Shown: in pieces, positions 9,870-29,150 of the stretch
How the letters are laid out: each line of letters begins with the position of its first letter
Position numbering within the stretch: position 1 is the stretch's first letter
Assembly (NCBI RefSeq): GCF_006345805.1
Contig: NC_043013.1
Span: 39,556,001-39,620,000, forward strand
Source: Octopus sinensis
Taxonomy: Eukaryota
Direction of reading: 5' to 3'
Length of the DNA: 64,000 nt
Program-made: the position numbers and the translations under genes
Notes under the pieces: generated by a model
What the model was told of the DNA's origin: nothing
The model's database searches: none
Seen by the model: the letters and a program-made list of their open reading frames with translations, nothing else

Positions 9870-9882
9870 GGTCCCGCTATAT
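9870..9882 (+). CDS. Microexon 1 (13 nt, phase 0 to 1)
   Basis: tttgttatatattttatag|ggtcccgctatat|gtaagt; encodes GPAI and matches the phases of both neighbours. Confidence 0.5.
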
Positions 9883-10854
9883 GTAAGTAAACCTTCTATA
9901 TTATAATATATTAACATTAGAGCAAATTAACGCTTCAAGTTAATTCATATTTTTTTCTCATATACACTTTAGAAGCAATTAGTCATATATCATACCTTTT
10001 CTGCATTTCGTTGGCGTAGAAAATGAAACAGATCAAATGTTGAACTCTACAAGCATAATTATACAGTAAATTTCTAAATTTCAACTTATGGTTTACATTA
10101 ATTAACAAAGAGCGCTGTTCATCTGGTCTGTATATATTAACAAATACATCAACTAACATATATACAACAGCTACATTAACTAACAGATATATTGACAAAC
10201 AGATATATAACAGATATATTAACTAACAGAAAGTGTTGATCATCTCATCTATAAACCATAGGATTAAATACTCAACGACAGTATTTTCGCCTGTTTCTAT
10301 TCTTGTTTGAAATGGATATCATTATCAACTATGTCATTACGCTACCACAACTGGTCAACGTCAATGAGAGTATACGTACGTGTGTGAAGTTGAAAGCCAC
10401 AGTGTTGCACTTAATGTAATTTTGCAAATCAGCTCCCCTTTCTAGGGAGAAAATCATTGGCGATGCGAATTTTTTCTCTCTCATTCTCTCTCTCATTCTT
10501 TTTCATTATATATATATGCATACATATACAGAGAGAGAGAGATAGAGAGAGAGAAAGAGAGAGAGAGAAAGAGAGAGAGAGAAAGGGAGAGAGAGAGAAA
10601 GAGAGAGAGAGAAAGAGAGAGAGAGAAAGGGAGAGAGAGAGAAAGAGAGAGAGAGAGTGAGAGAAAGCAAGAAAGAGAGAGAGAGAGAGAGTAAGTGTGT
10701 ATGTGTCCCTGTAACCTAACAGCGCGGCCATCCAGACCGATAGAATAAGTATTGGAGCCGATTTATTTGATTAAATGTTCTTCAAGGTAGTGCCCCAGAA
10801 TGACCGCAGTCTAATAACTGAAGCAAGTGAAAGATAAAAGAAATATATATACAT

Positions 10855-11750
10855 CTCATGGGTGGGTGATTTCAACTTGTCCAACAGGGGATGGCCTGAT
10901 AGGCTTTTCCTCACGGGAATGACGAGATATGAAGAAAGACATGCGGAATCCCTGCTTAACCTCACCTACAAGTTATACATGGAGCAAGGAATACTCAAAC
11001 CAACACAATATGCTTGATCTATCCTTCACAAATGATATGGATCTCATCCATAATGTGAAAGAGACACCGACGCTAGTCTCGGATCACAATATAATAGAGC
11101 TGAATATGTATAGACGAAAGAAACCCGCAGACAGGCAGCCAACGAAAAGCACCTAAAATCTACCCAATCTGAACATCTCTAAAGCAAACTGGAAATCAAT
11201 CGAGAAAGAGATCATCAAACAAACTGGCCCCAATGTCTCTCTACACCTAATATCGACATGAAATTCAAAGATTTCATGTCAGTAATACAAGCTATATACT
11301 ACAAGATTGTCCCAGAGGGAAGGGCCACTGCATATCAGAAAATAGATTCCAAGAAACAAAAAAAAATCTTGAGACGGCGTACAAAGTTTCAAAAGTCCCG
11401 CCAGGAAATAACACTGCTACAGATTGAGAAACATCTGAAATGTTTCTATGAAAAGAAAGGGCAAACCAAGGACCCTAGCTTATAAAAAAATATCAAATCA
11501 AACCCTAAAGTCTTCTTTAAGTATACCAAAGAAATTGCCTCCATGCAGTGAAAGGTAGGGCCACTATTCCAAGAAGATTGTTCCCTCACATGAAAACCTA
11601 ATGAGGATAAGTAAAACACTGAACGAAGAATTCAAAAGAGTTTTCATCCCATCCATACGGCACATGCAAATCGGCAAACCTTTAAAGAACTATACAACCA
11701 CAGATGTCAAAAGGGAGAAGTAAGCAGTTGATTACATCAACATCAAAGAG
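10855..11750 (+). mobile_element. Degenerate LINE with apurinic-endonuclease domain fragment
   Basis: GDFN motif; NMLDLSFTNDMDLIHNVKETPTLVSDHNIIEL; IKSNPKVFFKY; several stops and frameshifts. Confidence 0.7.
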
Positions 11751-13989
11751 AAATTTTTTCTAGCACAAGATCCAAATTTTGAAATAAGTGCAAACGTTTC
11801 TAATACTGTAACAAATGATTCTGGGTGTAACCGAAAAAATTATAGACAGTGAAAAAAAGCTTCTTTTAATTAAACAAATCTAGACTTGTTTTTTTCTTAC
11901 AAAGAAATCGACAATTCCGTCTACGAGTCCTTGTGAATCGGCTATCGTATCTACGAGTGATGGTGTGCGCGTGTCTAGTGCGAGTGAAAGTGATTCAGAA
12001 AGCGATTATAATTATATTTTTTTATTATAAATAATCTTCACATTCTTTCTACTTTACAGAAAGTATTCTTTACATTCTTCTGTTGGTTTATTGCCCTTTA
12101 TTGACGAATATTAACAATTTTATAAGTAAAATATGTTTTTTTTGGAAAGAAATTACGAGTTATAACATTGCTTTACTTCACGAGCGGTCTCCGGGAACAA
12201 AGTAACTCGTATATTGAGACATCACTGTATATATATATATTATATATATACAGTGATGTCTCAATATACGAGTTACTTTGTTCCCGGAGACCGCTCAGTG
12301 ATGTCTCAATATACGAGTTACTTTGTTCCCGGAGACCGCTCGTGAAGTAAGACAAATTTTTTTCATGTTTGTTGCACACACACGTCTTTGCTAGTATATA
12401 CGCAGTGAAGCTATACAATAGCGTCGTTTTTATTACGATCGGTGTTTTCCAGTAAATATCGGTACTTCGTTGTACCATTTATTTACTTTTATATATATAT
12501 ATATATAATGTTATGTATGCATCTATCTATATATGGATCAAAACAGTTTCATTCAAATCCCGTGCTACTTAAAGTTTCAAAGCATAAGATAATGGTATCC
12601 TCAGCCGTTAGAAATTTGATTTTAAGTACCATGGAATTTCAGACAAATTATTCTGATCCATCCATGTAACTCCCAATGAATGTGTTGGGTGCCACTCACT
12701 CGTAATGAATATATATATATATATATATATATATATATATATATATATATATATATACTGCATAAGTATATTTTTATAAACAAACCCAAAAGTCTTTGCA
12801 AGTTACGGAGAATAAATCGGAGATTAAATATCATTATGATATATGCGAAAACGCAAATTTTATGTAGTATTTGTCCGGAGATATTTTTTATGAACGTGTT
12901 CTGTTTAATAGCAGGAACTATTTCTGTAACAGACGAAAATCGTCCAACAGCTGTTGGTGAAAATGCTAGATGCGCAATTATGAGTCTTTAAGATCTGCCA
13001 ATAACATGTTCACTGTAACAGTTGTATACTAGTACAAAACTATGCCAGTAAAAATTCAGTAAACAGTGATATAATATTCACAGGTGTTGCACGAAGTCAC
13101 CCAGATGGATATGTAACAGGAGCTGTATTAGACTAAAAGGAACATCTATGTAACATATCCTAAGTAAATACATTGCGAATAAGTAAATTTACTGCGGCAT
13201 TCGTTTGGAAATGCTATACCTAATGGACGAAGCGGAAATGCACATCTAACATCCTCAGCAGCTGGTGGATTTTCACCTCTAACTGAAATAGTTTGTGTTA
13301 TTAAACACAGCACGTCCATGAAAGACATTATCTCCGGAAAAATATTGCGGTAAATTTGATTTTTCGCGATGTATTTACATTAAGTATGATATACAAATGT
13401 CTATTTGAATCTAATACTGCTTCTATTGCATATAACAGATTTTTAAAAACTCCTTACTATTTCTTTTCCAGTCGACAGAAAATCTGATCCTACGCTTGAA
13501 TCTAGAAGAAAAGTTTATTCAAAGAACAAGAAATGGCTGTGTAAGCATCCAAAATTTCCGACTGTTTTTCTTTTTCAGACGTTCGTTCTTGTTTTTGTAA
13601 AATTTTCTGTTGTTATTCCGTTAGTTTTGCATCCAACAAAGCACTACATCAATCCCTTATACAAGATTTAAGCTTCACAGGGTTCCCCACCAGGCACATA
13701 ACCAGATAACAATGTACCTCTAGTCGCTTATATCAACAACGAACCTAACACTGATAACATCCCTTGCATTACTTAAAAACAAAGAACTGTAAATTTAGTC
13801 CTTAACATCAGAGTTTTTAACTTCAGAAAGTTCATCATTTTTGTGTCTGTCTATCTATCTGTCTCTTTCTCTCTTTCTCTCTCCTCTCTCTCCTCCTATC
13901 TCACTCTCTCCTTCCCCATCCTCTCTCTCACTCTCTCACACACATCACAGTTGTTTCCTGATCTTTAGGAACACTACAGCGAGTCGCCA

Positions 13990-14560
13990 AACTCTTCTGA
14001 CCCTGCCAACTATGGAGACAGCTATTAACAAGAACGAACTCCAGTCCCTTGACCCTTTCTCCTCCTGTAGAACTATCAATGCAGTTTTAATTATACCCAA
14101 TCTATCGAAAACCTACACTCTTATGTATTTCATCAGTGTCACTCACTCCGCGAACTAGAAATTTTGTGAAGCAGTATTGTTGCCCTTGACATCAGTAATA
14201 TTTTCGGCCATATCTGGTGCACGAACCTGCAAACAAAACTGCTCGTCTGTGGACACCATCTGTCATATATCTTTTGGACTGGTGACCTTTTAGTCAGATC
14301 GCATGAACACGACATGCACTGACGGGTTTCTATTTGCCCTACAGTATCATTCAGTTGTTCTCCAGGGCTTAGTTTCACGCTCTGCATTCTATTTTTTGTG
14401 TTTCAACGATCTAGTGACTGCTACCTCTACTGGCACCCATTTCTATATAATTAACACCATCATATCTTTTGCACACGAGTGTCGTCCACAAATGTCCTAG
14501 ATACGTCGCGCCAAATAAGCGCTCACTCTACGAACAGAGATGTCAAAAACATACACCATA
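13990..14560 (+). mobile_element. Highly degenerate LINE reverse transcriptase fragment
   Basis: VALDISNIFGHIW... resembles the RT motif VALDISKAFDRVWH; SDPANY resembles SDPSNYRPI. Confidence 0.5.
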
Positions 14561-27965: not shown

Positions 27966-28589
27966 AGAGAATATATATACATATATATATATATATGTAT
28001 TATATATATATATATATATATATAGACATTTTTGTGTGTGTATATGTATATATATATATATATGTGTATGTGTGTGTGTACAGATATATGTATATATATG
28101 TATATTTATATCTATATCTATATATGTATATGTATATCTATATATACATGTATATGTATATCTATATATCTATATGCATATATATATATATGCATATATA
28201 TATATATATGTAAGTATATATATATCTATGTGTATATATATGTCTATGTATTTGTATATATAACTATGTGTATATGCATAAATATGTATGTATACATATG
28301 TATATGTATATATATATATGTATGTATATGTATGTATATTTATATATGTATGTGTATATATGTGTATAGTTATATGCATATGTACGTATTTGTGCGTATA
28401 TATATGTTTGTATATGTGTGTTTGTGTAAATACACACACACTCGCACACGCACACACACACATACATACATATATATTGTTGTGTCTGAGGAAAGTCATT
28501 CTGCTTTAATGCCGTATCAATTAGCACACAGACCGGTTCGATTTCCACTCATTTACATTTAAAATTGACTCTGTCACATATATATATAT

Positions 28590-28990
28590 GTGCAGGAGTG
28601 GCTGTGTGGTAAGTAGCTTGTTTACCAACCACATGGTTCCGGGTTCAGTCCCACTGCGTGGCACCTTGGGCAAGTGTCTTCTACTATAGCCTCGGGCCGA
28701 CCAAAGCTTTGTGAGTGGATTTGGTAGACGGAAACTGAAAGAAGCCCGTCGTATATATGTATATATATATATGCGTGTGTGTGTTTGTGTGTCTGTGTTT
28801 GTACCCCTAGCATTGCTTGATAACCGATGCTGGTGTGTTTATGTCCCCGATACTTAGCGGTTCGGCAAAATAGGCCGATAGAATAAGTACTGGGCTTACA
28901 AAAGAATAAGTCCCGGGGTCGAGCTGCTCGATTAAAGGTGGTGCTCCAGCATGGCCGCAGTCAAATGACTGAAACAAGTAAAAGAGTCAA
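28590..28990 (+). mobile_element. SINE family B
   Basis: Full-length copy. Confidence 0.85.
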
Positions 28991-29133
28991 AGAGTATATA
29001 TGTAGACACACATTCACACACACACACACATATACACACATACATATACTTCTGAGTCAGAGTGAGATGTTAATAGGCAGACATGTAAAAATAAAAAATA
29101 TATTAAAATGTTTCTTTTCTCTTCTTTATTCAG

Positions 29134-29150
29134 CTGATGCAGAAAACAAA
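29134..29150 (+). CDS. Microexon 8 (17 nt, phase 1 to 0)
   Basis: tttcttttctcttctttattcag|ct gat gca gaa aac aaa|gtaagt; SDAENK. Confidence 0.6.

Follow-up and report, generated by a model that had tools for sequence, protein, structure and literature searches.

The question raised by this locus is whether eight segments of 13 to 32 nt, scattered along a 64-kb window (the whole stretch of DNA analyzed, from contig NC_043013.1 of Octopus sinensis), are exons of a gene or only resemble them. A first-pass annotation had described the segments as consecutive microexons that join without stop codons. When the window was searched in six frames for the peptides given there, all eight were found on the + strand, with the acceptors, donors, and peptides that had been reported for them (Table 1). 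The reading that we favor, although the case for accepting it and the case for doubting it are about equally strong, is that they would be true coding microexons, spliced constitutively and belonging to an unannotated, microexon-rich, lineage-restricted gene of the + strand, whose product would include a probably disordered linker. That the segments are spliced at all is the firmer part of this reading, and the signals in the DNA make it probable.

The eight segments are flanked by complete splice signals. Each acceptor AG follows a tract in which 11 to 16 of 17 positions are pyrimidines and closes an AG-free zone of 26 to 101 nt, while the donor is GTGAGT in microexon 2 and GTAAGT in the seven others. 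Taken together, the exon bodies are purine rich (A+G, 64%; A, 41%) and contain 16% T, compared to 40% T in the flanks. The exonic half of the donor consensus was present in microexon 5 only. For its part, the intronic half carried an A at position +7 in seven of the eight microexons, a base that was found at 11 of the 35 other GTRAGT sites of the + strand (Fisher P = 0.006). The 5' end of U1 small nuclear RNA (snRNA) reads AUACUUACCUG (this being the textbook U1 and not that of this organism), and GTAAGTA(T) would pair with it over 7 to 8 intronic bases, an extended pairing that would compensate for exon ends lacking the usual AG. The first bases after the acceptor AG in exons 1 to 8 are GGTCCC, CTGAAC, GTGTAT, GTGGCC, GGTCGT, CTGCAG, GACGGT, and CTGATG; in microexon 6 a second AG, in frame, is present 6 nt downstream (at the end of CTGCAG). 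No enrichment of Rbfox (TGCATG), UGC, or branch-point motifs was observed near the exons.

A microexon-like signal pair was defined as at least 13 pyrimidines in 17 positions, an AG, and a GTRAGT 6 to 40 nt downstream, and such pairs were counted on both strands. The + strand contained 12 and the - strand none, compared to a mean of 1.25 and a maximum of 4 in 100 dinucleotide-preserving shuffles. Candidates were also ranked, blind to phase, by the acceptor score plus the intronic-donor score. The top 18 candidates of the + strand included seven of the eight microexons (all except microexon 4), an upstream exon containing an ATG (exon C of the first-pass annotation), a 63-nt exon next to microexon 8, and a 69-nt candidate. 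The highest score of the whole window was that of microexon 8, and the 69-nt candidate ranked fourth on the + strand. All eight microexons are single copy within the window and are clustered with these neighbors between 5.5 and 30 kb. The competing candidates at 19155, 27558, and 1362 sit in repeats, either short or long interspersed nuclear elements (SINEs or LINEs). Five other high scorers are repeat borne, namely, the candidate at 33718 and four exon-like SINE segments, three of which were among the top 18; this assignment excludes the candidates at 39152, 47895, and 654.

These counts bear directly on the possibility that the segments are pseudo-exons that are never spliced, arising from the chance pairing of splice-like signals and chosen by a reader who was seeking them. 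Such a choice was made, at least in part, since the first-pass annotation conceded that it had selected for phase compatibility. Furthermore, SINE copies on both strands carry exon-like segments of 68 to 69 nt so convincing (pyrimidine tract, AG, and GTAAGC) that signal quality by itself may mislead, and two phase-compatible candidates, at 36928 and 39243, proved to be part of, or to border on, antisense LINE sequence. However, 12 signal pairs on one strand where 1.25 are expected, with none on the other, together with the clustering of single-copy exons, an enrichment of A at +7 for which nobody had selected, and a joint open frame (see below), are not what chance pairing would be expected to produce. 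When the strand-specific excess, the ranking, the uniqueness, the +7 A, the AG-free zones, and the composition are considered together, accidental pseudo-exons are unlikely.

If the segments are spliced, the next point is whether they would be translated. Joined in order, they make 192 nt and 64 residues, GPAISEPERDSNDENVYINSQPRISGRSNTIGREKPEKKQAADRRKSSDGASNLEKRNSDAENK, with zero stops, as the first-pass annotation had stated; the frame that it had chosen is the only open one, the other two containing 3 and 5 stops. The chain is entered in phase 0 from exon C and left in phase 0 into the 63-nt exon, which is open solely in the frame that continues the chain. The ATG of exon C is at 5575, and its context, acaATGg, has A at -3 and G at +4; the coding part of the exon would span 5575-5610 (36 nt) and read MGNFLENVTKIL, and its 3' end reads ...AAAATATTA followed by gtaagt. 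The whole of exon C is open in the frame of the chain, and this ATG is therefore not necessarily the start. From the ATG exon through the eight microexons to the 63-nt exon there are 97 open codons (P ∼1e-3, with the composition of each exon retained), which increase to 120 when the 69-nt candidate is added (P ∼2e-4), with 5 to 12 stops in the other frames. Peptides spanning the junctions would include DSNDENVYINSQPR, across microexons 2 and 3, and SSDGASNLEK, across microexons 6 and 7.

Several results weigh against the reading of these segments as coding microexons. For the eight exons alone, the significance of the open frame is modest (P = 0.023 by within-exon shuffling). A-rich, T-poor sequence is poor in stops whether it is coding or not. 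Exon C and the 63-nt exon were picked by signal strength, and their phase was checked afterwards. The acceptor of microexon 4, which a (TA)n run precedes, is weaker than the other seven, and this exon fell outside the top 32 of the signal ranking. The joined 64- and 138-amino-acid peptides gave zero matches (E ≤ 10) in a collection of ∼5.8 billion proteins, and no Pfam family or PDB chain matched them. This collection includes Octopus bimaculoides RefSeq proteins, crustacean proteins, and Logan run assemblies, so a well-expressed coding transcript of a sequenced species might be expected there, which counts mildly against the proposed gene. As a control, a mariner open reading frame (ORF) of the window retrieved 68 matches, among them NCBI proteins of O. 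bimaculoides and crustaceans as well as Logan run assemblies, so that the collection covers animal proteomes and some, at least, of the run assemblies. Finally, neither a convincing terminal exon nor the rest of the gene past 29947 was found in the transposable-element-dense region between 30 and 64 kb.

Many of these points would be accommodated by exons that are spliced into a long noncoding RNA or a long 5' untranslated region, their open frame being a by-product of purine-rich, T-poor composition. Besides that composition and the modest significance of the eight-exon frame, the lack of any peptide homologue in the protein collection, Pfam, or PDB, and of any downstream coding exon or recognizable domain, is in accordance with a noncoding transcript. 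Nevertheless, such a by-product would have to run for 97 to 120 codons across 10 to 11 independently bounded exons, from an ATG in good context; its probability is 1e-3 to 2e-4 even when the composition of each exon is kept, and in the 63-nt exon only the continuing frame is open. We consider a noncoding role about as improbable as accidental pseudo-exons. The null protein search means that the product is unannotated and unassembled in the collection, in agreement with the earlier view that annotation misses this gene; the claim that ab initio methods would overlook it gains support from real-looking + strand exons whose peptide is absent from 5.8 billion proteins. The exact junction between microexons 2 and 3 had no match in metagenome contigs, a result to which we give no weight; no known RNA families or tRNAs were detected in the window, and our literature searches yielded no comparable gene from cephalopods or from any other animals outside the flatworms.

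The arrangement of the phases is the most unusual property of the chain. As the first-pass annotation had claimed for the eight exons, their lengths modulo 3 are 1, 2, 1, 2, 1, 2, 1, 2, and their phases alternate between 0-1 and 1-0. Under uniform and independent lengths the probability of this alternation is 3e-4, a figure calculated post hoc. Skipping any single exon leads into stop codons (8 of 8 cases); the alternation would thus serve as a frame lock, for whatever reason it arose. The frame survives the loss of any even run of neighboring exons, the new junction codons are never stops, and 51 of the 256 possible subsets are open. The sums of exon pairs 1+2, 3+4, 5+6, and 7+8 are 45, 48, 51, and 48 nt, respectively, and equally tight sums arise in only 2 of 24 permutations; the codons interrupted by the phase-1 intron within these pairs are, in order, Ser, Ser, Ala, and Ser. 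This hints at a unit of ∼16 codons in which the position of the intron varies. The four pair units showed no significant mutual similarity, and the similarity of their flanks was of low complexity only. We therefore rejected the idea that the alternation arose when a module of two exons was duplicated in tandem.

The 69-nt candidate, which the first-pass annotation did not list, complicates this pattern. Microexons 1 and 2 are 5.5 kb apart, and the candidate falls between them; it is single copy in the window and in the incoming phase reads (F)DRKSDPTLESRRKVYSKNKKWL (FDRKSDPTLESRRKVYSKNKKWL). It is open in two of the three frames, and its openness in phase therefore says little; a cassette exon and a pseudo-exon are both conceivable. 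The statements that the microexons are consecutive and that none is a multiple of 3 are true of the eight, and may fail if this candidate is used, since the microexons would then not all be consecutive and one exon of the series would be symmetric.

From the alternation, the first-pass annotation had derived a combinatorial linker, in which adjacent pairs (units of 45 to 51 nt) would be alternatively spliced to yield many in-frame isoforms of a disordered segment. The arithmetic of even runs on which this rests is correct, 51 subsets stay open, and the tight pair sums accord with removal in pairs. However, no sign of any skipping was seen, near-consensus signals on all exons are typical of constitutive microexons, paired skipping across introns of 1.4 to 5.5 kb would proceed by no evident mechanism, the pairs share no cis motif, and the pattern is interrupted by the symmetric 69-nt candidate. 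Since single skips all run into stops, constitutive inclusion is no poorer a fit than a combinatorial design, and we regard the latter as very unlikely. Equally speculative is a fuller version of the frame lock, in which a nonflatworm micro-exon gene with all its microexons asymmetric would permit removal only in pairs (∼16-codon units), thereby controlling phosphorylatable disordered linkers and consigning mis-spliced products to decay.

Extension of the chain downstream was attempted with several candidates. Those at 36928-36964 (37 nt) and 39243-39276 (34 nt) were phase compatible and brought the open frame to 120 codons, and both were withdrawn, the former lying inside an antisense reverse transcriptase ORF (RVT_1) and the latter adjoining another antisense LINE fragment. 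The candidates at 30746-30837 and 33718-33748 are repeat copies, the former from further down the signal ranking, and that at 31209-31287 does not match in phase. Least probable of all is a set of poison or cryptic exons within one long intron of some larger gene that has its true coding exons elsewhere, each occasionally included alone and leading to decay: each exon, when included or skipped alone, does shift the frame, the + strand is T rich over most of the window from ∼12 kb (4-kb bins from 12001), which fits one long transcription unit, and the 3' end of the putative gene was not found, but eight or more successive exons with one joint open frame, in phase with both an ATG exon and the next exon, would be unexpected, and a larger conserved coding exon was seen nowhere in the 64 kb.

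Returning to constitutively spliced coding microexons, the proposed gene would comprise at least 10 to 11 exons of 13 to 92 nt across ∼24 kb (5.5 to 30 kb of the window), separated by introns of 0.7 to 5.5 kb full of SINEs, LINE fragments, and microsatellites. Recognition of such exons would depend on signal strength in place of exon length. Long pyrimidine tracts closing an AG-free zone would mark the acceptor, pairing of the intronic donor half (GTAAGTA/T) with U1 snRNA over 7 to 8 bases would offset nonconsensus exon ends, and the purine-rich exon bodies (64% A+G) may serve as enhancers. The alternation 1, 2, 1, 2 would then act as the frame lock described above: loss of a single exon would result in a premature stop and presumably nonsense-mediated decay, leaving full inclusion or the loss of an even run as the only productive outcomes.

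The predicted product would be a lineage-restricted protein starting with MGNFLENVTKIL. The 64 residues encoded by the microexons would be hydrophilic, charge balanced, Ser/Asn rich, and probably disordered, with 13 K+R, 12 D+E, 27 S/T/N/Q/G/P, and 7 hydrophobic residues, and they contain kinase-type motifs both basophilic (RRKSS and KRNS) and acidophilic (SEPE, SNDE, and SDAE). This segment would be flanked by an amphipathic N terminus and by a basic amphipathic stretch, KFKGLFIKNKTHKRKRS. There is a loose likeness, which we take as a lead only, to MARCKS-like proteins, which have an N-terminal Gly2 and a basic Phe/Lys effector segment. The predicted start does not conform to the PROSITE-type myristoylation pattern because it has Glu where a small residue is required. 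Judged by eye, the start MGNFLENVTKILGPAI, itself a prediction, has no hydrophobic core of a signal peptide.

If spliced as predicted, the locus would hold a gene in which nearly every exon is much smaller than exon definition is believed to require. It would offer a natural test case of how the spliceosome finds exons of 13 to 32 nt across kilobase-scale, repeat-filled introns, and a test of phase alternation as quality control versus paired skipping, besides being a reminder that standard annotation cannot see lineage-specific microexon genes. If the segments are not spliced, the locus shows how convincing pseudo-exons bearing splice signals can become.

Repeats and other features of the window are included in Table 1. 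One SINE family, with a segment consisting of a pyrimidine tract, AG, open frame, and GTAAGC, was the chief source of false positives in the splice-signal scans; its segments could be exonized where inserted in sense orientation. A SINE begins ∼30 nt downstream of the 63-nt exon. A SINE core sequence from the window had no counterpart in the literature searched. A further short repeat is present in two copies, 84% identical and followed by GTAAG, one of them ∼250 nt upstream of microexon 6; by eye it resembles a tRNA-derived SINE head (..GGTCCGGGATTCGAGCTCACAACC..). An ORF fragment with no Pfam match ends ∼185 nt upstream of microexon 4 and contains the motif PHPPYSP.IAPPDFHLF, which is typical of the C termini of mariner transposases, and the acceptor tract of microexon 4 itself comes straight after the (TA)n run. 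The mariner/Tc1-type element, the ends of which are inverted, encodes HTH_48 and Transposase_1 domains in an ORF that is broken into three frames. Copies with ∼90% DNA identity are present in Logan run contigs (SRR314120xx) and in an ENA contig, which share only this element with the window. Its protein, which gave the only match informative about taxon, is closest to copies of the crustacean Oratosquilla (82 to 87%), with only 56 to 66% for O. bimaculoides proteins. The antisense LINE-type remnants gave RVT_1 and zf-RVT matches and include ORF pieces with no Pfam match. Microsatellites are very dense in two regions, with a GC content of 0.28 to 0.31, and yield long spurious ORFs (YIYIYI.. and NNNN..) in all frames.

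Table 1. Candidate exons, repeats, and other features of the 64-kb window (position 1 is the first letter of the window; acceptor and donor give the intronic bases next to the exon)
Feature	Position	Strand	Length	Phase	Reading	Acceptor	Donor	Remarks
Exon C	5519..5610	+	92 nt	phase 0 end			GTAAGT	13/17 pyrimidines; single copy in window
Microexon 1	9870..9882	+	13 nt	0-1	GPAI + one base	tttatag	gtaagtaaa	AG-free zone of 101 nt; unique
Microexon 2	15379..15410	+	32 nt	1-0	(S)EPERDSNDEN	ttctttcag	gtgagtatt	15/17 pyrimidines
Microexon 3	16854..16881	+	28 nt	0-1	VYINSQPRI	ctcttttaaag	gtaagtaga	14/17 pyrimidines
Microexon 4	18265..18284	+	20 nt	1-0	(S)GRSNTI	tctgtttcag	gtaagtatt	11/17 pyrimidines
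Microexon 5	20466..20493	+	28 nt	0-1	GREKPEKKQ	ctctttgaaag	gtaagtaaa	exon ends in AAG
Microexon 6	23858..23880	+	23 nt	1-0	(A)ADRRKSS	cgtttcaacag	gtaagtgtt	AG-free zone of 67 nt
Microexon 7	27324..27354	+	31 nt	0-1	DGASNLEKRN	ttctcttttatag	gtaagtaca	14/17 pyrimidines
Microexon 8	29134..29150	+	17 nt	1-0	(S)DAENK		gtaagtatt	16/17 pyrimidines
63-nt next exon	29885..29947	+	63 nt	0-0	TFMNKFKGLFIKNKTHKRKRS			basic amphipathic; second best + strand score; unique
69-nt candidate exon	13472..13540	+	69 nt	1-1		ttcttttccag	GTAAGC	15/17 pyrimidines
SINE exon-like segment	19861-19929	+	68-69 nt
SINE exon-like segment	29997-30064	+	68-69 nt
SINE exon-like segment	49939-50006	+	68-69 nt
SINE exon-like segment	51696-51764	+	68-69 nt
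SINE exon-like segment	27876-27944	-	68-69 nt
SINE exon-like segment	28900-28968	-	68-69 nt
Short repeat, copy near microexon 6	23510-23612	+
Short repeat, other copy	30730-30837	+
ORF fragment	17784-18080	+
Mariner/Tc1-type element	48497-49786	+	∼1.29 kb
LINE-type remnant	35372-37497	-
LINE-type remnant	39413-45469	-
Dense microsatellites	4000-8000							(TA)n, (TATG/TACA)n-like; (AAT)n at 5230-5460
Dense microsatellites	54000-62000							(TA)n, (TATG/TACA)n-like

Among known systems, the closest in architecture are the micro-exon genes (MEGs) of schistosomes, which have very short exons and introns of 0.1 to 5 kb and encode small, lineage-restricted products that are hard for automatic annotation (10.1101/2023.06.21.545858). 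The proposed gene would likewise have ten or more very short exons, its introns being far longer (0.7 to 5.5 kb), and its coding region would consist mostly of exons of ≤36 nt. MEG proteins carry an N-terminal signal peptide, the genes are confined to Schistosomatidae, and they are described as having a "symmetrical structure" (10.1101/2023.06.21.545858). In contrast, no signal peptide is visible here, no sequence relationship to MEG proteins was found, the host genome does not look like that of a flatworm, and the eight lengths are all nonmultiples of 3, the reverse of symmetry. According to what DeMarco et al. are said to have reported in 2010, MEG microexons are multiples of 3, and any one of them can be skipped.

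Neural microexons dependent on SRRM4/Srrm234 (eMIC) resemble the present exons in size class (≤30 nt), long pyrimidine tracts, and AG exclusion zones. As reportedly described by Irimia et al. in 2014, they are usually single cassettes in conserved genes and mostly keep the frame. Their donors are weak, whereas those found here are near perfect. The eMIC-dependent class also has a UGC motif near its 3' splice sites (PMC8797185); here TGC occurs within 40 nt upstream of two of the eight acceptors (at -36 and -26) and within 25 nt of none, with 0.47 per 40 nt expected by chance.

The 5' mini-exon cluster of troponin T, reportedly described by Breitbart et al. in 1985, is likewise a series of tiny exons, one after another and close to the 5' end, and encodes a charged, variable N-terminal segment. 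However, the mini-exons of troponin T belong to one phase class, so any combination stays in frame, whereas the alternating phases found here make single skips break the frame; there is, moreover, no sequence similarity to troponin T. With recursive-splicing (RS) exons, the segments share a strong 3' splice site, a strong 5' splice site shortly after it, and kilobase-scale introns, but an RS site regenerates AG followed by GTRAGT, and only two of the eight exons start with GT, none with GTRAG, and all form one continuous frame. If the proposed gene is real, its exons, all of which shift the frame, would follow a plan contrary to the symmetric one of MEGs, troponin T mini-exons, and neural microexons.

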